Below, one piece after another: positions 2,940 through 48,600 of a stretch of 64,000 nucleotides of DNA (within the stretch, counting starts at the first letter, position 1; each line of letters begins with the position of its first letter). Source of the DNA: Saccostrea cucullata (Eukaryota); contig NW_026930475.1 in assembly GCF_032062105.1 (NCBI RefSeq), positions 124,001 through 188,000 of the forward strand, read 5' to 3'. The translations under genes and the position numbers were made by a program. The notes beneath the pieces are model-generated. The model had not been told where the DNA came from. It worked only from the letters and a program-made list of their open reading frames with translations, and ran no database searches.

Positions 2940-3856
2940 TCTCTTTATGTTCTTAGTGTAGTCTACTTGCATGCCACATTATATTATAATCAGACTTAAA
3001 CTGTATTTCGATTAGCATTTTGAGAGTTTTTAACAGAAATTTCTATTTTTAGCAACAATGGCAACACCGTTCATCGAAATCAAAAACCGATAAATAGAAT
3101 TATGTATCTTAGTGTAGTGTACTTGTGTGCCAAGTTATATTGAAATCAGACCAAAACTGTAAGCAGAGTAGCATTTTGAAAGAATTTCACAGAAATTTCT
3201 ATTTTTAGTAACAACGGCAACACCGTTCATCGAAATCAAAAACCGATATACAGAAATATGTATCTTAGTGTAGTCTACTTGTGTGCCAAGTTATATTGAA
3301 ATCAGACCAAAACTGTAAGAGAAGTAGCATTTTGAAAGAATTTCACAGAATTTTCTATTTTTAGTTACAACGGCAACACCGTTCATCGAAATCAAAAACC
3401 GATAAAATGAATTATGTATCTTAGTGTAGTCTACATGTGTGCCAAGTTATATTGAAATCAGACTTAAACTGTAAGAGGAGTAGCATTTTGAAAGAATTTC
3501 ACAGAAATTTCTATTTTTAGTAACAACGGCAACATCGTTCATCGAAATCAAAAACAGATACACAGAAATATGTATCTTAGTGTAGTGTACTTGTGTACCA
3601 AGTTATATTGAAATCAGACCAAAACTGTAGGAGGAGTAGCATTTTGAAAGAATTTCACAGAAATTTCTATTTTACAGTAAAAAAAAATCAAATTGTTTTA
3701 GAAATGGTGGCTGTACCAAACAACGGCAACACCGTTCATCGAAATCAAAAACCGATACACAGAAATATGTATCTTAGTGTAGTCTACTTGTGTGCCAAGT
3801 TATATTGAAATCAGACCAAAACTGTAGGAGGAGTAGCATTTTGAAAAACTGTTAAG

Positions 3857-35300: not shown

Positions 35301-38300
35301 GTCCACTCATGAGATTGTGAACAATTTCTATAACCTCATGCTCTATTTACAATATTAAGATTCTTTTTTCCCCAAATAAAATTAGAATAGTTTTAAAGCT
35401 TTATAATGTTAATATACCAAGAAAGTAGTGCTCTCACCAAAGGAAAACTTTACATACATATATAATATTTTATAAATCAATTTAAAGTAATGCTTCAATC
35501 AAGAGAAATAAAACTACATGTGTATTTAATTTTTTAAAAGACATAGTTTGGAGTTTTAAATAACATGTCTTGAAAATTCATTTTGAATGAAAAGATTAGG
35601 AAATTTTTAAGCTAACAAGCTGAAGCAGAACTGTGTGCTGAATTCTAATGGTCTAATAGATAAATTCCATCAGTTTATGTGAACTTGAATGAAATGATTT
35701 TAATGAAAATTTCATTTGCATGGTACAAATGATAAAAGGTATAGAAAAATGTGCATGTGTGTGCTATTAAATCTGGTTGATTCTTCAATGAAAATAACTA
35801 CCAGTATTTTTCTGACCATACCATCTGTAGCTGCATATTATTCCATTAATATATGCATTGAATTTTAAAATACCTAATTTATAAATCACTGCAAATTTTA
35901 GAACCAGTGTATTTGAAAAAGTGCCAAGCATTAATTCTATTGATGTGTTCCAATTGTTAAATTCAGACTGAATCAAATCTTTAAATGGCTTTAATTTTCA
36001 GGTTCAGATATATCAAGTTCTTTAAAAGAACATTGCAATGAATCATTTTGAAAATCCTTTAAGAATTTACCTTTGAAATAAATTAAGAATTACTACTGTA
36101 TATTCATTCCTTCATTGTGCTACATAAGGAACTTTTAAATTTGATAAAAGAAATAGTACATGTAGTTCCTTAATGTACCAAACAATAAAATATTAAATGC
36201 ATTGAATCATTTTATTTGTTACTTTATCAATTTAATAGTATACTCATCAAAAGATATACATCTATATTTTTGTGGAATTTCCCATGCAATTTGGCAACCA
36301 TTAATTTCTAAAGCTGTTTTACAATAGTACATATATGACCTAAGCAACCCCTCACCCAGGGGATGATGAAGTCACAAGAGAGGGTTAAGAAAATTGAGAG
36401 AATTGTATTTTTTTAAAATGAAGATTCTTTTAAGAGCAAAAATAACATAAAGTCTGGCTAAATTATATTTTTGTAATATATGAATTTTGTACCTTTGTCT
36501 GTCTTTGAGGCTACAAGATATTCTAAGTTTCAACAACAACAAATCATTGTGTGACCCACAGGTCTCTTGTTAATGTATATTTTGCAGAAAACCCCTTTTT
36601 TATTTCCAGTGATTTTAAGGATTCTGTATTTCAGGCATGCACTACATTTTAAACGACAATTTTTATGTTTGATTTTATTACATAGGCTATCAGGAGAACC
36701 ATAGATAAGAAGAATGTTGATGTTTACCTGATGTTTAATGATGAACTCAATGCTGTGAAGAAGGAACTCACCAACAAAGCCAAGTCACCCATCCCCTGGC
36801 ATCCGAAGTTTGCCGGACAAGCTCTGTGGGCCAGGCAGCTAAAGAGGAGGATTGAGAGAGTCATGATGGTTAGTATGTCCTCCTGAAATATTTCGTTCTC
36901 TACATTTTGTATGGTCTTGCTCTTGTTCTGATATTGTAAACATGGAAACTATGAAAATCTGGAAAAGAGTCACAGTGATGAAATTCAGAAAGTGACCATT
37001 GTCATCAGTAGTCTCTGTCTTTGTCTCGGCATCAATTAATGGATAATTTTACCATTAAAAATTGTCAAGCTTTAAGTCCATGCATCAATATTTAACCTTG
37101 TTGATGTAATATTTGCAGTAAAAGGTACAATAAAATAAATATATTCATTGTACATGACCATGTACCCTTGAATAATACTTTGTCGACTTGAGTCACATAA
37201 TAGTTCTAATGATTGATGTTTTGTTACAGGTTCTGGACAGAGCATTCTTTCTACCTCCCACTGGTAAGAGTGAGGAAGTGAGGACCCAGTACCAGCAGCT
37301 GTGTCAGGCTCTGGACGAATACATCAGAAAAACATTCCACGAGTGGACGCTTACTGTGGACAAGGTACAGGATAGAATCAGTGTCTGGTTATCAAAGATC
37401 ATTTGAACAAAAGAATTTTAAAAATTGTCATCGTAGATCATTTGAACAAAAGAGTAATTAAAAAATCTTTGAAGTGAGTTTTTAATGAAATAGTGAATTA
37501 TATATATTCAGATGTGTAACTTATTGCAGGAGCCAGAGAAGTTACTGGAAGTACCGCTGATGTGTCGAAGTTCTGAGAGACCCCCAATGTTGGACATCAA
37601 CTTTAATAGGTAGATGTTAGCAGATAGGATGAATAACATTTAGTGTTTTAAATTTGTTAGGAAGTGTAGATGGTAGACTAAAGGCCCTTTAGCAGCATAA
37701 TCATAATTGGAAAAAATGTAAAGGGTAAAACATAAAAATATACAAATCTCCCTGAAGATGCATAGATTGACAATGTATGTTTTGTGTTACAGAGGCTTGC
37801 TGAAGATGTTCCAGGAAATCCACTACTGGGAGCGGCTAATGTTTGAGATTCCTCATTATGCTACAAATGTGTACAACAAACGGGAGGATCTAAGATCTCT
37901 CCGGGAACATGTCCTCCTTGTTGTTAGGGATTACAACAGGTCAGTAGAAGAATGCATAATATGTCTTTAAAAGTTTACTTCTAAAAAATCAAATACACAT
38001 GATAAAATAAGGATAATGTGGAAGATGAAGTCTCAATCCTCACTCCTTTAGTGTGTTGCTGTAAGAGAATTTTTTTTTATCCTTTTTAGCTTGATGACTC
38101 AATAGAGCTCATATTAATTTAAAAAGAACTTAGTATGAGCAATTGCTTCTGTTATAACCTGAATGAATTTAACAAAAAATCTTGCAGTCATTTGATTTTA
38201 ATTTGAAGTCATCTTGTCAAAGTGCACATCTTATATGGTATCTTGCAATCTGTTGATTCTTTTAGGATCATAGCTGCATTGTCTTTGGAAGAGAGAGGAT

Positions 38301-41300
38301 TATTCAGAGAGAGAATCCGATTCCTTGATAAGAAAATACACCCAGGACTTACAAAGTTAACTTGGGCTTCCAAGGGCATTTCAGACTATTTTGTGACGGA
38401 TTGTCGGATTAATGCAGCCAAAATCCAAGCCATGGTGGACGACTACAAGGGAGCTAACCAGGAGATCTCCACGATGTGTGTTAAGATTAGTGAACTGTCC
38501 CTGATCAAGATAGACAACAGGAAAGTGTACGAGAATCTGGAGTTTGATGAAGAACAGGTGAGGAACCCAAAGCCATGCAGTGATCAGGCAGCAATTTTCT
38601 ATTTGAACTGAAACTTACTGTAAAAGCAAATCTACAAATCTGCTTAATCAAATCCTGAAATTTTACTGTAGAAATTATTTTATCATTTCTGTGTCATATC
38701 AGTGATGACCAGGGTGATAATGAGTATTTAAATATTATTTTTCTGTGGCCTGAAGTGTGTCTTAAGAATAGTTGTGTGATCTTAAAGTATTTCTTGTTCT
38801 TATATTTATTTCATGATTTATGATTTTCAGGCAAAACATCGAGAACTCACCACTGAAAAGCTGAAGACTATGCATATGGAAATAGTGCGAGTCATGAAGA
38901 AAACATTTGAAATCTTTAAAACAGATGGACAAGAGGTGACTCAAATTCAGTGAGAGTGGATGATGAATGTATTTAAGGGGGGTATTAATTCATTCAAAAT
39001 TGATGAGAGTATTTAATGGAGAACAACACTGTGCTCATTAAAATGTCTTTTTTGGGTAATACAGTTTTCTTATTTATTATAAAAAAAAGTTGTATCCTAC
39101 AGGGGGATGAATTTGAGATGAAAAATCAATTTTATAAAGGAAATAAGTATTTATAATTTTTGAAATGCCACCCATAGTAGAGTATTCATTAAATTATGAT
39201 TTATTTTTAAATAGATAATATTAATTTTTGTGTGTATGTTTCACAATATCCATGATTTAATTTTAAATAGTTAGCATTATCCTTTTGTGTAAATGTTAAG
39301 GTACAACAACATTGGGTGCGGTACTTGGAGAAGATGGACAGAATGGTGGAGGAGGCGTTCAGACTGAATGTGAAATGGTCACTGCAGGAATTATCTAAAG
39401 CAATCAATGGTGACGGAAAGTCAGCTCCCAACCCACTGTTCAGGGTCAAAGTCTGCTTACAGGGAGACAAGGTAACATTCTGCACAACAAAGCACATCTT
39501 TCTTCTATAAACAATTCTATAACTCCTTATTTGTGTGATTTAATCTGATCATTACCTGTATGTTGCAGGTTGAGTTCCAGCCCACCCTGAAGCAGTTGGC
39601 CTCTGTGATTGGAGGAATTGGCAGTCAGCTGACTAATTCTATCAAGGGAATCAACAGACTGCCACTTATACTGGCCAAGAAAAAATCTACAAAGGAGGTA
39701 TATTATCTAGTACCAGTTGTTTGGTCTATTTGTTTAATTGACACATCTTTTTCTCTAGGAGTGTTTAAACTGATCATGTTTTATCGTTACTTGCAGCCTA
39801 TATTTGCGGTGATAGCATCTGATGAGGAAACCAAAAAGATACAAACTGTCATCAATCAAGGAATGGCAACCAATGCTCAGAACCTCCAGAATTACCTCAG
39901 TACATGGGACAACTACAGAGAGATCTGGGAGATCAATAAAGACATGTTTATAAAGAGATACCAGAACCTCAACCCACAGGTGGCCTCCTTTGATGCTGAT
40001 ATTGCTAGGTCAGTCACCAAGTGTATTACTTTTTTTGACAAAACAGCAGAGTGCAATGTTTCACAACTAGATCCAAAGGCCTGTTCAGGTCATTTGACTC
40101 ACTGTGTTAACATCACTTTTTTTCTGTATACATGTAACTTAAAAGGTATAAGCAATGTTAAAACATAAAAATGTTTATAGTTTTTGGATTGGATTATAGG
40201 TATGATGAGGTGGCCAATAATGTGCAGACCCAGGAGACCATATTAAACATACAGTTTGTACTTCTGGACTGCTCTCCTCTGAAGTACGCCATTCTTAGTC
40301 ACTGTACTGAGTGGCAGAATAAATTCACCACTCTACTCAGTACCATCGCCACAACTCGACTCAAGGAGCTACACACATTCCTTAAAGAAAATGGAGAGAA
40401 GTAAGATATTGCATCATTAATCAATATTCTGTTTTCTAAATAATAATGAGTTTGAATCAGATTTAATGCTGAGGAGGTGCAAATTTTTGTAATCACATTT
40501 TGTTGATATGATATTGTCTGAATAAGTGAATAGGAAAAAAAAAGGGTCTTTTTTGTAATAGCAGAAAGTGACTCTTATTACTGACTATAAAGTGGAGACA
40601 AGAAAAATAATGCCAAAAAATAAAGGTCACACAAAGTTCAGTATTTAAATAATATCTGTCCATTTAGTGTCAGCAAACCACCCCAGACGTTGGATGAGCT
40701 AGGAGAAAGCCTGACCTTGTGGGAGAAGTTAAATGGTGGATTAGCAGAGACAGAGGCTAAGTTCCCACCTCTTCATGATCAATTCAGCATCCTGGAAAAA
40801 TACGAAGTGGCAATCAAGGAGGATGTGACAACCATGTTATCTGAACTCAGCAATGACTGGATAGAGTTCCAGCAGAAATTAATCGATTCTGAACAGATGC
40901 TTAAAAAACACAAGGTGAGCTTGATATTCTTATAATGAATATCTTATGAACCTAATTTTCATAACTGAGGAAGTACATGTATGTTGGAATTTTTTCTTTT
41001 AAGCTAGAATAATTTCTTTTACCAGCTAGGCTGGTAGAGCAATGTCTTGAAATTCATTACAATTATATACAAGCATTTTCAGTAAAAAAAAAAAAAAAAG
41101 CACCCAATTCTATGAAATGAAATCAGCAACCTCTTGCTTTGTATCTCCCTAAATAAAATTCTTTTGTCTTCAGGAAAAATTCAGAAGTGGATTGCTGGCC
41201 CAGTCTGAAGAATTCAAGAAACAGGTTCACAATTTGGTTGACGAGTTCCAAACCAAAGGCCCGTTCACCAGCACCATCGCTACGGCCGAGGCCCTGGAGA

Positions 41301-44300
41301 ACATCAACAACATCCGATCTCAGATGGAGGCTCTGAAGAAACAGGAACAAGAAATCCGTAAAGGGCTCAACATCTTCAAGATTGATCAACCACCGTCAAA
41401 GGAGATCGCAAATCTAGAGAAAGTAAGAATGCCTAGTAAAAGAGGTTAATCCTTCACATGACATGGAAGATATTAAACATAGTTGTGATGTAAGAAGGAT
41501 GTGCTGTTTTACAAAGTATTCATCCTTTCATGCTTTTATGCTACACATAACTCGCATTTGAGATTAAATGACATTGGTTGTTAAAGAAACAAACATAGGG
41601 CATAGTTCAATGTTTATGTATATTGTATTCATACGTACAATGGAACATGGATTGATATTTGAAATACTGTTATGTCAAAATGACCATTACAATTGTTGTA
41701 TTGAAGGATCTGGAGGTGATTGAGACGATCTGGAACCTGAACAAAGAATGGGAAGGCCTCTGGGGAGACTGGAAGGGGGACCAGTTTACTCAGCTTCAGA
41801 CTGACAACATGGAGACCTCCTCACAGACAATATATAAGAAACTGAACAGGATGAGCAAAGAATTAAAGGTAGGTCTATCAGTTACATGATGATGCACAGG
41901 TCACCCATGGATGACTGTTTATTGTGATCATGACAATGTGACTGTTCAAAAAAATGTGCTGGAAACAATACATATCTTCTTTGTTTCTCCTGTAGGATAA
42001 GAATTGGGAGGTTGTGGAAACAAGCAGGAATCGTGTAGATCAGTTCAAGAGAACCATGCCACTGATTACTGATCTGAAGAACAAAGCCATGAGACCTCGT
42101 CACTGGGACAAAATCCAGGTAAAGCAGTACTTCAGTTGTACACAACATGAAGGAAAAGCCTTCCTCAAGATTTAAAAAAATATATATATTAAATTTAAAT
42201 TTTTGGGTTCAAATCCACTTAGATTATTATTGATAATTGTATTGTTAATTATTTCTTAAGACTGAGATGCAGCGACAATTTGATCACAAATCAGAAGATT
42301 TCACCTTGGAAAAGATCATAGAATTTGGATTTGATCAGTATGCCGAAACAATCGGTGACATCTCTGGTGCTGCAACCAAGGAGTTGGCAATTGAACAGGT
42401 AAACTTATCATCCATTTGAAAATTATATACCTCTTACTGTAAATGAGATATTGTTTTTCAATAAAAATTCCATCCATTTGTATCTTTAGGGCCTGGAAGC
42501 CATTGCCAGAACATGGGAGAGTACAGAATTGGATATAACCTCCTACAAAGACAGAGGTCATTTCAAAGTCAGGTGGGGGTTGTTTGAGTATATTCTACTG
42601 AAGTGTAATGTGTTTTTTGTTGGAAAATATCATAATGATTATAGAAAAATAATGGCCCCAAACTTTGATTTATAGGAGTACAGATGATGTGTTCACGGCT
42701 CTGGAGGACAATCAAGTCCAGCTCTCCACAATGAAAGCCTCCAGGTTCGTCAAGGCCTTCGAACAGGAAGTGGATAAATGGGAAAGAACTCTGTCTCACA
42801 TCCTGGAAGTAGTAGAGATGCTGCTGACTGTACAGCGACAATGGATGTACCTCGAGGTAAAGGGATTATATGTGTTTTTAATAGTTCATAGGCACTATAC
42901 ATGTATCTGTCTTAGGTAAATTAAGTGGTATAAAAGCATAAAATTAGATCTTAATTAAGTAGAAGTGGTTAAAGTGGTTCATAGGCATTAGATGTTTCTT
43001 TAAATAAATGTATTTAAAGATGCATTCTCTTATGTGCAGTGAATGCTGTATTGTCTACTAATTGAAACATTTAGTCTTATAGCCAGATGAAGTTACCTGG
43101 CATACTATAGCACTAATTTTCTCAATTCCAAATTTTCCTAAATTCAATTTTTTTAAATAATTACAGAATATCTTCCTGGGGGAAGACATCAGGAAACAGC
43201 TACCACGGGAGTCAGCTGACTTTGATGACGTTAACGCCAAGTGGAAAGTCATTATGACCAGGCTAAACAAGGACCGTAATGCACTGAGAGGAACTCATCA
43301 CGAAGGTAAAATTACCAAGCGTCTAGTAGAGATGTAGAACATCAGTAGTATAATTTGCCCATATGAGCCCTTGATTCCAGAGTTACTCTAGAAACTTACA
43401 TTTAATGTACGTGTATGTGTTAATTTACTCAGGAAATGTCTGTAGATTTCGTAAATCTTTGTCCCAAACAATCCCTGAAATGAATCACTTCTGGAAGTCT
43501 CAAAATGTACCAGTAAACAAATAAAGGCACACATCTTTGAAATTGTGGATAAAAAAGTTTGAATTACCATAATTGTTTTTTAAAGTTGTTTAAATACCCA
43601 CTTGATTTGATTGCTTTACTTTTGTGACAGGTTTACTGGAGGAGCTGAATGACATGAACGTGAAGCTGGAGGAGATTCAGAAATCCCTGGACATGTATCT
43701 GGAGACCAAGCGACAGATCTTCCCACGATTCTACTTCCTGTCTAATGACGACTTGTTAGAAATCCTAGGACAGTCCAAAAATCCCAAAGCCGTGCAGCCT
43801 CATCTCAAAAAATGCTTCGACAACATCAAGAGCTTGGATATGAACAAGGTAAAACTGACTAAGTTTGCAGTACCCAAACAATGTAGTCTCATATTTATGA
43901 TTTTTGTCACAGATATAGATATAAATGACTGTTATTAGATAAAATGTTCTGTATTTAGCCTGGACTGAAATGGGAGGCCAATGCTATGATATCCTCAGAT
44001 GGAGAAGTGGTGCCCTATGAGAGACCTGTTTACTTGGATGGACCAGTAGAGGTAGGAAAAAATATTCAATGGGATCACAACAGCATTTCAACTGCATTGT
44101 GCATACTTTGAAAGAATGTATTAATTAAAAGCATTGTTGGAAATGAATAAAAATGTTTTCTATGCTGCCAGTTAATGCTATGTTTCCAGTCATTTTCAGG
44201 TGATTACCATTATATTTCACTCATTTCAATGTCTATCAGGTACAATATATCAGTGTTTATCTGTTTTAGTCTTGGTTATGTGATGTGGAGAAGACAATGA

Positions 44301-45658
44301 GATGGACTTTACAAGATGAACTAAAAAAATGTAAAGGAAATTTGAAACAGAAGCATGGCATGACAAAGAGAGACAAGTGGATTAAGGACCATCCTGGTCA
44401 GCTGTGTATTACAGCCAGTCAGATTCAGTGGACAGCTGATGTAGAGAAAGCCCTGAGGCTGACCAAAGACAGAGGCGACAAGAAGGCACTCAAAACCATG
44501 AAAAAGAAACAAGTGGCCATGTTGAACAAGCTGTCTGAAGCCATCCGAGGAAAACTGGAAAAAATGCAGCGATTGAAAATTGTGGCTCTTGTGACCATTG
44601 AGATTCATGCTAGAGACATTATTGAGAAACTAATCAAAGGGGGTGTGTCTGATGAAAATGCCTTTGAATGGCTGAGCCAATTGAGACTTTACTGGGAAAA
44701 GGTGATTATTGCTAATAGAGCAAACTTACAAAGAGTTGATGTGTCATTCATGTATGCACTGGATATGAAAGCGTAAATATTCAAAAGCAAAGATCATGCA
44801 AATCAAGTATACATTGTTCATTTACTTTCTTTTTTAATATTTTGTTCTAGCCTCCAATCGATAACTGTGTAGTGAAGCAGACTAACACACAGTTCCCGTA
44901 CGGCTATGAGTACCTAGGAAATTCTGGTCGTCTGGTCATCACCCCCCTTACTGACAGATGTTATGTTACCCTAACGACGGCCCTTCACCTCCATCGAGGG
45001 GGGAGTCCTAAAGGCCCCGCAGGAACCGGCAAAACTGAGACCGTCAAAGATCTGGGCAAATCTCTGGGCATGTACGTCATTGTCGTCAACTGCTCCGAGG
45101 GCTTAGATTATAAATCTATGGGCAAAATGTTCTCAGGTCTAGCCCAGGTATGTTTAATGAATGTTTATTTTGTCCATCATTTTTATATTTGATTGTCAAT
45201 TGAATATTGATGAAATTTGTTCTTTCCATCAAATATGTTCAAGTTACATTAGAAATGCATTAACCCCTTCCATGGCAAAGATTTTAAGCATTTTTAGACA
45301 AATTGATATTAAGATTTCAATGCATTTTTGGGGTATTTCTTGTAATTTTTGTATATACCAATGTATATATATTCTGAAAGCAGGTATTGTGTTGTTTCTG
45401 AAAATGATTATAAAATTTCATTTCAGTTGTCATGGCAACAAAATACACCATGATCATGCTGGAATTTCCATTTATTAAACAATGATTTTCATTCTAGTTT
45501 TTTGCATAGTTAGATATATAAAAAAATATTGTATTGTTGTGGACATTGAAAATTATGAACATGTTGTGATGTAAACACGTACCAGAATTTAGCATTTTTA
45601 GCTCTACTGGTCAGAGACCAGAAGATCTTATGCGATAGTAATGCGTCCGTCGTCCGTC

Positions 45659-45689
<31 letters not shown>

Positions 45690-48600
45690 CTGTCTGTTAA
45701 CAATTTTTCAAAATGCTACTCCTCCTACAGCTTTGGTCCAATTTCATTATAACTTGGCACACTAAGATACATAATTCTGTGCATCAGTTTTTGATTTCGA
45801 TGAGCGATGTTGCCTTGGTTACTAAAAATAGAAATTTCTTTGAAATTCTTTCAAAATGCTACTCCTCCTGTGTTTCAGTATAACTTGGCACACAAGTAGA
45901 CTACACTAAGATACATAATTCTGTGCATCGGTTTTTGATTTCGATAAACGGTGTTGCTGTGGTTACTAAAAATAGAAATTTCTGTGAAATTCTTTCAAAA
46001 TGCTACTCCTCCTACAGTTTTGGTCTGATTTTGATATAACTTGGCATACAAGTAGACTATACTAAGATACATAATTCTGTGCATTGGTTTTTATTTTGAT
46101 GAGTGGCAAGGATCATTTTTCTATTTATTGCTGATTTAAAGTCTCAAGTCCCAACTGCTACTTTTCTCTTCCTTTGTTTTAAGTATAAACCAGTAGAGCT
46201 TGAGATAAAAATGAATGTTTTTTCACACTATACTTGTTTTTCAAGTCAGAAAATTAGAATGCGTATATGCCATGTAAGGGGTTAAATGAACACAATTATT
46301 GAATTTAACAGAAAAAATTTTAGCAGATTCTGGCTATTTTACTGGCCTTATCAACTGGACAGGCCAGATTTGTGTTTGAGGGACGAGAAATTGATCTGGT
46401 GTGGTCCTGTGGAATCTTCATCACAATGAACCCAGGTGAGACATTTATTTGTATGATATACATGTGTACCATATCACAGTGAACTTCTGCAGTTTTTCTG
46501 TATTTTGCAGAATAAAATTGCAAATTTTCAAACCTATGTCTCTGGTTTTGAATAGAATCACAAAAGTGCAGACTTGAATTTAGAATGCTAACTGTGATTT
46601 GTAAATGACAAAAATTTTGAGCCACAGACATTTTGCATGTGTATTATAATATGCATTATGACACCATTCTGTATTTTGTAGGATATGCTGGTAGAACAGA
46701 GTTACCAGACAACTTGAAATCCATGTTCCGTCCCATTGCTATGGTTGTTCCTGACTCAGCCATGATCTCTGAAATCATCCTGTTTGGAGAAGGCTTTGGA
46801 AACACCAGGGTACAAGATATTCTCTTTTTTTCATTAAAAAAATTGAAAATTTTTCATCTGTTTTATAGAATAATTGATATGCCATAGTATAAGCGCATAG
46901 ACATAGGCAAAGTCCTTATAAAATCTTTCATTACAGGTCCTTGCCAAGAAAGTGTACACTCTGTACTCCTTGGCTGAGCAGCAGCTGTCTAAACAGGATC
47001 ACTATGACTTTGGTTTACGTGCCCTAGTGTCTGTGTTGAGGTACGCCGGCGCCAAGAAGAGGTCTAACCCCAACATGCCTGATGAAGAGGTTAGTTAGAT
47101 TATATAAATTGTCTAAATTGAGAAAGTGAAATGACCCCTCTATGCTGGATTGAGTGAAACACAATAAGAAATTTGTCTAAATTATTTATTAAGGTTGTGT
47201 TTGAAATAACGAATATCTTTACTTCAAACTTTACCGCAGTTACATGACTGATTTATTCTGAAAAATTAAAATTTTTCATTGAAATGGATTACACTGAATA
47301 GCAGAGAATTCAAGGCATATAGCACTTCTAACATAGTGCCTGGCATGTTTTTACAGATCTTACTCCTGTCCATGAAGGATATGAATGTGGCTAAGCTTAC
47401 TTCCACAGATCTGCCATTGTTTAATGGCATCATGTCGGATCTCTTCCCAGGAATAGAAACTCCCACAATTGACTACTCAGAGGTAACCTACTGCATCAAT
47501 TTCTGAACAACATCGAACTGTTTTAATTCAAATTTCAAAATATGCTCAAATGTATGGAATTTAGAGTCTTCCTACATGTGTATCTTATTAATTTACATTA
47601 TGACTTCAGATGAAGAAAGCTATTCAGGCAGAGTTAAAGAACAACAGTCTGCAGGTTAACGCTCACACAGTAACAAAGATCATACAGCTGTACGAGACCA
47701 AGAGCTCTCGTCACTCGGTGATGATTGTGGGTGGTACCCAGTCAGGAAAAACTGTCAGCTGGAGAATGTTACAGTCCGCCATGACAAGACTGAACAAAGA
47801 GGGAGCGGCTTATCAGGCTGTCAAGGTAAATCTAACTTCTAGACTGTAGAAAGGGGGGTATAGAAGGGGGAATTCACTTGTACTTACATAGAGGTTAATT
47901 GTTTCAGGACTTTCCTCTGAATCCCAAGTCTCTGTCTCTGGGAGAGCTGTATGGTGAATTTGACATCAATACAAATGAATGGACTGATGGTGTTCTATCC
48001 AGTGTGATGAGGCAGACTTGTGCAGGTTAATATTGGACATTTACAGTTCTCGTTGTAAATAGGGCTGGCATTTTAATGTAATTTTAATAATTAATTTCTT
48101 TGTTAATTAGATGAGAAGCCAGATGAGAAGTGGCTGGTCTTTGACGGACCAGTAGACACTCTATGGATAGAAAGCATGAACTCGGTGATGGACGACAACA
48201 AAATTCTGACCCTGATCAATGGGGAACGTATTGCTATGCCAGAACAGGTGTCTCTTCTGTTTGAGGTGGAGGATCTAGCAGTGGCGTCCCCTGCCACCGT
48301 ATCCCGCTGTGGTATGGTGTACGCTGATTACCAAGACATAGGCTGGCAGCCCTACGTAGAGTCCTGGCTGGAAAAGAAAAAAGAGAACAAGGTAGAAGAT
48401 TAGTTTACAAATTTAAAGCCTCTTTTTCCTACTTGTATTTAGGTTTCTTTTTGACCTTTTTTCAATATTACTTATGTATTAATTAATAAAAAAGCAAGAA
48501 ATTAAGATTAATGAATTTTTTTTTACTTTTCCCAGCCTCTGGTTGAAGAACTGCGTAGACTATTTGATAAGTACCTGGTCAAGATCCTGGATTTCAAACT

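Follow-up and report, generated by a model that had tools for sequence, protein, structure and literature searches.

We examined a 64,000-nt stretch of the genome of the oyster Saccostrea cucullata (positions 124001-188000 of contig C12612 in a 1.17-Gb assembly of 23,869 contigs), referred to below as the window. It contains a gene for the dynein heavy chain DNAH2, the assembled copy of which lacks the Walker-B segment of its first ATPase module, AAA1. The window has no N and a G+C content of about 35%. The gene occupies the following part of it:

31696-64000, + strand: DNAH2 (inner-arm dynein I1/f beta heavy chain) ortholog, recognised by tblastn and PDB matches and continuing past the window end

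The assignment to DNAH2 had already been made in an earlier note on this DNA, and it was upheld by PDB bit scores and by alignment with a protein from a relative. The exon piece 44902-45147 matched two DNAH2 chains of the PDB best, at 164 bits, whereas other dyneins reached at most 133 bits. The Chlamydomonas chain 8glv_Co, the Dynein-1-beta heavy chain of the flagellar inner arm I1 complex, scored 126 bits against the same piece. Since the best PDB matches are DNAH2 chains, the gene is the DNAH2 ortholog, and its membership by descent is beyond doubt. In animals, DNAH2 corresponds to the I1/f beta heavy chain. The relative's protein P0004 (4430 aa) aligned with the window by tblastn over residues 16-4333, in collinear order and in 63 high-scoring segment pairs (HSPs). 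The gene was analysed exon by exon with tblastn rather than as a joined, spliced model, and its 3' end lies outside the window.

Within the part of the gene that encodes AAA1, two coding pieces are separated by an interval that holds a transposable element:

44860-45147, + strand: AAA1 exon with the Walker-A P-loop GPAGTGKT, ending MFSGLAQ in phase 0, followed by the donor GTATGT
45148-46323, + strand: assembled interval between the coding pieces, 1176 nt, consisting of 112 nt of unique sequence, the element, and 38 nt of unique sequence, without Walker-B coding
46324-46435, + strand: surviving 3' part of an AAA1 exon, 112 nt, 38 residues, corresponding to PF12774 positions 107-144

The Walker-A sequence GPAGTGKT lies at 45007-45030 and marks the AAA1 P-loop. 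The stretch 44902-45147 translates as GYEYLG...GPAGTGKT...MFSGLAQ and matches PF12774 (AAA_6) at positions 2-83 (E 5.5e-42). On the other side of the interval, the surviving 38 residues are 100% identical to those of the relative P0151, in which ..VAQ directly precedes them. Between 45147 and 46324, PF12774 positions 84-106 are absent, that is, 23 residues with the AAA1 Walker-B motif, for which 69 nt are expected at the break position between the acceptor and CAGATTCTG. A stretch of 23 aa is likewise left unmatched in P0004 (residues 1857-1879, tblastn), as are residues 1749-1771 in the 3414-aa open frame of the metagenome contig L063. These gaps confirm the loss of the Walker-B segment claimed in the earlier note. 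The motif needed for ATP hydrolysis (hhhhDE; GCFDEF) is not present in the assembled copy.

The missing 23 residues had no match in the six frames of 45100-46360, and the motifs DEF[NGS]R, FDE[FL], GAWG and WGCF occurred nowhere in any frame of the whole 64-kb window. Within the window, the rest of the gene is present. Small exons account for two further gaps in the alignment with a relative (37539-37610 and 38828-38938), and the HSPs that contained stops were those crossing short introns. The 23 residues are the sole piece missing within the window. The statement that every other exon is intact therefore holds for the window, as far as exon-by-exon tblastn reaches.

The 52-residue open frame starting at 46324 was used as a query. 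It returned 16 proteins, all of them open reading frame (ORF) calls on genomic contigs of relatives. The sequence ...VAQ stood directly before QIL in all 16 proteins, and in 5 of them the whole 23-mer was visible. Metagenome contigs provided sequences from distant relatives only, two of them transcript-like (L063 and L064) and one genomic (L130). In L130, an exon ends with ...GLAQ at position 1092 and is followed by a 376-nt intron. The next exon starts at 1469 and reads ACT GGA GCT TGG ... GCA CAG CAG ATT CTG. Where the relatives have the glutamine codon CAG, the window has TAG (46321-46323). Because the 23 residues and QIL lie in one exon in the relatives, the window is without the first 69 nt of that exon; the missing piece is the 5' part of an exon shared with QIL... 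and not a micro-exon. A deletion of the 5' part of the exon had been assumed in the earlier note, and the 16 proteins and L130 agree with it. The intron itself is old, since ORFs of three close relatives (P0001-P0003, P0167-P0171) read through the same donor right after GLAQ.

Several other arrangements were considered and dropped. A micro-exon hidden in the intron was rejected on the lack of a six-frame match and on the joining of the 23 residues to QIL in the relatives. The idea of repeats collapsed around a lost micro-exon fell with the one-exon structure of the relatives. We also compared the intron flanks of the window with the read-through tails of relatives (P0168, P0002, P0003) as possible orthologous sequence, and the by-eye matches were no better than chance matches inside the element.

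We also note two features of the contigs of relatives. L063 (14.7 kb) and L064 (14.0 kb) look like full-length DNAH2 transcripts, with one uninterrupted frame of 3414 codons in the part of L063 that was fetched. In the contig L102 of a relative, the exon of which is 95% identical, the intron after ...GLAQ (1440-1854) is a minisatellite with units of ~8-17 nt (CTGGGACTGTGTA/TCTG...). The contig ends within this minisatellite, before the next exon.

The interval between the coding pieces is largely made up of a miniature inverted-repeat transposable element (MITE):

45260-46285, no strand assigned: TTAA-flanked piggyBac-type non-autonomous element (MITE), 1026 nt, with 18-nt terminal inverted repeats beginning CCCCTTCCATGGCA
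45600-46200, no strand assigned: inner part of the MITE, bounded by a 12-nt perfect inverted repeat and containing a (GTCY)n microsatellite and tandem units of 144-156 nt

The arms of the element (45260-45277 and 46268-46285) are 18 nt long and 94% complementary, and TTAA stands at both ends (45260-45263 and 46282-46285), as in a TTAA target-site duplication. TTAA was found on both sides in 11 of 13 distinct other genomic copies, which measured 650-877 nt. Searches with the arms gave 350 (left) and 552 (right) candidate places in the genome, with 87-95% identity among the 40 scored for each. The family thus comprises at least 350 candidate copies with sizes of 650-1026 nt, and its six-frame translation is full of stops. 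The terminal inverted repeats start with CCC.../...GGG, as in piggyBac. Together with the dispersed copies and the lack of a transposase ORF, the terminal repeats identify the element as a piggyBac-type MITE. The earlier note had placed the end of such an element near the lesion, and this proved correct, with TTAA on both sides and 38 nt between the last base of the MITE (46285) and 46324. The inner part of the MITE is very abundant in the genome, with 6946 first-look candidates and 80-96% identity among the 40 that were scored. An array of the same 144-156-nt units is also present at ~2950-3790 of the window, where it was seen as repeated translations.

An intact copy of the lost exon was sought in the whole assembly. 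The PF12774 profile gave 105 matches, none of which was an intact DNAH2-type copy of the lost exon, and contig C12612 covered only profile positions 1-84 and 143-327. The matches that do cover positions 84-106 are on other contigs; apart from the one on C18719, each has adjacent AAA_6 matches, for which reason they were taken for other dynein genes. P0159, which contains the 23-mer with a DNAH2-specific continuation, had 21 matches genome-wide, again without an intact copy: the best were paralogs with 51-62% identity, and the window's own locus matched only with three stops inside. MITE-free DNA (44200-45259) did not reveal a second copy of the locus either; four of four candidates were scored, and the three others were paralog P-loop matches. 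In searches with MITE-containing flanks, scoring covered 40 each of 6946, 350 and 552 candidates, for the most part MITE copies. Searches with PF12774, P0159 and flank DNA thus found neither a misplaced exon nor one on a second haplotig. The earlier finding that the missing residues are not in the intron now extends to the whole assembly.

Some dynein loci are present in two or three copies with identical scores (C846/C10314/C6622, C3564/C9535, C4583/C23043). These duplicated loci show that haplotigs have been retained for part of the genome, whereas DNAH2 occurs as a single locus. Two neighbouring exons of another dynein gene, on contig C12694 (52675-52794 and 53639-53737), both match the Walker-B stretch, at PF12774 positions 83-124 and 78-118 and with 68% and 76% identity to P0159. 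The pair looks like duplicated, perhaps mutually exclusive exons.

Four sequence sets were aligned on 44100-47900, two of them raw RNA runs (X22, X23), one a DNA-like contig set (X1) and one an RNA contig set (X5). All four differ from the window at many common sites, by ~5%, and the letter of the window also segregates at a few sites. The first record of X1 (1343 nt), for example, departs from the window by 38 letters and 3 gaps over 698 nt. Because of the ~5% divergence at common sites, these sets represent a close lineage and not the assembled animal.

Positions 648-1342 of the X1 record align with 44459-45156 of the window, and positions 315-442 align with 46322-46449. Between these flanks there are 205 nt in the X1 record and 1165 nt in the window, so the X1 contig is without the 1026-nt MITE at this site, and it has room for an intron of ~140 nt in addition to the 69 nt. 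The X1 alignment stops 9 nt past the donor on one side and at 46322 on the other, that is, 2 nt (AG) before 46324.

Altogether 40 differences between the window and the close lineage were listed, of which 34 fall in mapped exons. They affect 32 codons, 31 of them synonymously and 1 non-synonymously. This 31:1 excess and the open exons indicate that purifying selection acted on the gene up to a very recent time, which excludes an old pseudogene. By the same two observations, the lesion is either young or an artefact. We further note that the MITE and the 69-nt loss are two rare differences only 38 nt apart. This suggests one cause for both, which may be a mutational event or an error of the consensus where an insertion is heterozygous.

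The sequence immediately upstream of the surviving coding piece has two features that bear on the splice sites and on how the break arose:

46301-46318, + strand: EFNRKN in another frame, resembling EFNRIN of the lost segment; relic or chance match
46318-46323, + strand: TTTTAG, an acceptor-like site that would give an in-frame 23-residue deletion, with TAG where relatives have CAG (Gln)

Reading from 46312, after TTTAACAG, gives KKF followed by a stop, and the in-frame stop described in the earlier note is thus present. Its second splicing claim, that use of TTTTAG results in an in-frame deletion, also agrees with the phases: the donor that follows 45147 has phase 0 and a codon begins at 46324, so that the AG at 46322-46323 keeps the frame as an acceptor. 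Its view of TTTAACAG (46311) as the original acceptor, followed by filler, is a supposition; TTTTAG as the old acceptor fits equally well. We looked for a template of such filler, and no 12-mer of 46286-46330 and no 13-mer of 45148-45259 recurred nearby. The putative acceptor at 46323 has a pyrimidine share of 0.44 at -20 to -3, which is the lowest value (tied) among the 31 acceptors of this gene that were scored out of 35 exon starts.

Two accounts of the break fit the sequence. In one, the original acceptor is TTTTAG (46318-46323), behind which a piece of exactly 69 nt has dropped out, with AG/AG micro-homology. The non-MITE intron would then measure 112+4+38 nt, which is near the length deduced for X1. 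In the other, the loss was larger and messier, and the AG is a remnant of the old glutamine codon CAG. The resemblance of EFNRKN to EFNRIN was counted in favour of the second account. EFNRKN was the sole match in a local tblastn of the interval at E 50, and it is the single EFNR in the six frames of the window. The chance of such a match is ~0.003 within 40 nt of the break and ~0.01 across the whole unique intron. Its score of 25 ranks it only tenth among ungapped matches of the 23-mer across the window, with nine scoring higher, and the 15 nt upstream of it do not match the expected codons. The EFNRKN stretch also contains TTAAC, a branch-point-like motif.

The consequences for the product can be predicted for either use of the splice sites. 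If the AG at 46322-46323 were used, the mRNA would be in frame and the protein would lack 23 residues, among them the catalytic Asp-Glu pair and the beta-strand at the centre of the AAA1 core. ATP hydrolysis at the main site would then be impossible, and misfolding would be probable. Use of the old-looking site at 46311, or failure of the acceptor, would lead the message into a stop. With either outcome, this copy of the gene would be null or motor-dead.

In the established AAA+ architecture, the Asp-Glu of Walker-B terminates the central beta-strand of the core. In yeast dynein, an exchange of E for Q in Walker-B of AAA1, the main hydrolysis site, is described as virtually abolishing ATPase activity (PMC4359366). 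Such engineered mutants are hit in the same motif as the oyster gene. They are point changes, however, in which the fold is kept and ATP is trapped, whereas here the whole strand and the start of the following helix (23 residues) are gone. By analogy, the loss of the whole strand should have an effect at least as strong as the E-to-Q exchange and would probably prevent folding, and misfolding seems more likely than a clean 'rigor' motor.

For the orthologous mammalian gene, nonsense and missense variants in humans and knockouts in mice are reported in PMC11506864 to result in malformed, immotile sperm tails, and some variants are described there as impairing the ATPase. Loss of motor function would be expected here too. 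The oyster case differs in that the animal is an invertebrate and in that the lesion, as read from the assembly, shortens an exon in frame by 69 nt next to a MITE. In Chlamydomonas, the 1-beta motor of the I1 complex is described as needed for the control of microtubule sliding, and in strains without the 1-beta motor domain a headless or dead beta motor still assembles and sliding control is changed (PMC3031465). Those strains are nulls to which truncated transgenes were added, whereas the oyster change is a natural or artefactual micro-deletion. Given the sperm-tail defects and the role of I1 in sliding, a homozygote would be expected to suffer, while a heterozygote probably would not.

We consider it somewhat more probable than the alternatives combined (about 0.55) that the assembled haplotype carries a real, young and probably heterozygous null or motor-dead DNAH2 allele, that is, a lineage-specific lesion in which the first 69 nt of the Walker-B exon have gone. 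Errors in long-read consensus sequences are usually small insertions or deletions, and a clean loss of 69 nt is atypical of them, which favours a real lesion. The lesion would then be one polymorphic allele, heterozygous or of low frequency, and not a fixed loss, because oysters bear a heavy mutational load; PMC5804265 describes their genetic loads as the highest known among marine animals. The case resembles other broken bivalve alleles associated with transposable elements in that a gene under constraint bears both a young MITE insertion and a lesion on a single assembled haplotype. It differs from cases of insertion into exons, as the MITE lies outside the exon, 38 nt away, and a causal link would be a supposition.

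Several points weigh against a real allele. The break and a structural difference (presence or absence of the MITE) are 38 nt apart, and at such a place the consensus of collapsed haplotypes can err. A deletion that starts exactly at the intron-exon boundary and is in frame is an improbable random event. The best matching DNA set shares 0.18 of words with the window and differs from it in ~5% of letters, and the junction 46321-46324 is thus read from the assembly alone. Among the RNA joints and loose ends listed (15 of 171 and 24 of 978, respectively, dominated by the MITE), none was at 45147 or 46324. Finally, an exact look-up of two ORFs spanning the junction in a protein collection gave no match, a result that is uninformative and also lends no support. 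The earlier note had offered a recent null or motor-dead allele or a consensus error. The recency is supported by the open exons and the codon differences; allele and error are both compatible with our data, and both are ordinary outcomes.

The error could have arisen if the animal has an intact exon and ~69 nt were dropped, perhaps with a few more garbled, when haplotypes that differ by the 1026-nt MITE were merged. We regard this as quite possible, although we do not favour it. The break is only 38 nt from the end of the MITE, and the absence of the MITE in the close lineage means that it may be heterozygous in the source animal, even if heterozygosity in that animal is a supposition. That DNAH2 is single while other dynein loci were kept in two or three near-identical copies may indicate a collapsed region, and the possible EFNRKN relic may be garbled exon sequence. 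On the other hand, both flanks are clean, the surviving part of the exon has 100% protein identity to P0151, and the site shows no N, contig end or change in composition. Losses of 60-70 nt are, moreover, not typical of consensus errors.

The two remaining explanations are improbable even together. One is that the chain is functional as assembled, either with the 69 nt supplied from an unassembled or distant exon or as a Walker-B-less chain that serves as a non-motor scaffold in I1. The in-frame deletion and the AG preceding the surviving codons would be compatible with this, and partly crippled chains do exist, as a DNAH12-type dynein without microtubule-binding domain is described in PMC11949491. 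However, PF12774 and P0159 searches found no orphan DNAH2-type Walker-B exon anywhere in the assembly, relatives carry the segment in the same exon, and the pyrimidine tract of the putative acceptor is the weakest (tied) of the 31 scored. Given the established AAA+ architecture, the loss of the core beta-strand also goes beyond the loss of catalytic side chains. A functional chain of this kind is very unlikely. The other explanation, a fixed loss in a species that no longer needs DNAH2 and in which the gene is decaying, has in its favour the missing catalytic core and the lack of a second copy or intact exon in the assembly. It is difficult to reconcile with the openness of all other exons in the window, aligned across ~4300 residues, and with codon differences that are synonymous in 31 cases and non-synonymous in 1. 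In the cluster of the closest relative that was found, more than 100 contigs carry the exon, and DNAH2 defects malform sperm tails in humans and knockout mice according to PMC11506864. We hardly believe in a fixed loss, the least probable of the explanations considered.

A variant of the real lesion would have wider consequences. If the lesion were common in this lineage and the AG at 46323 were used, a MITE-linked flanking deletion could have produced an ATPase-dead I1 beta head that still assembles in the two-headed I1 complex and alters the waveform of cilia and sperm. We see only a slim chance of this.

Should the gap turn out to be an artefact, it would be a local error that leads gene prediction to a DNAH2 lacking the catalytic site. 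Existing knowledge of dyneins is altered by neither outcome. If the favoured explanation of a real, young null or motor-dead allele is true, it adds another recessive loss-of-function allele to those of bivalves and provides a marker for studies of genetic load. Homozygotes should then show poor beating of sperm or cilia, and the allele would offer a handle on the role of the I1 beta motor in the gill cilia and sperm of a broadcast spawner.

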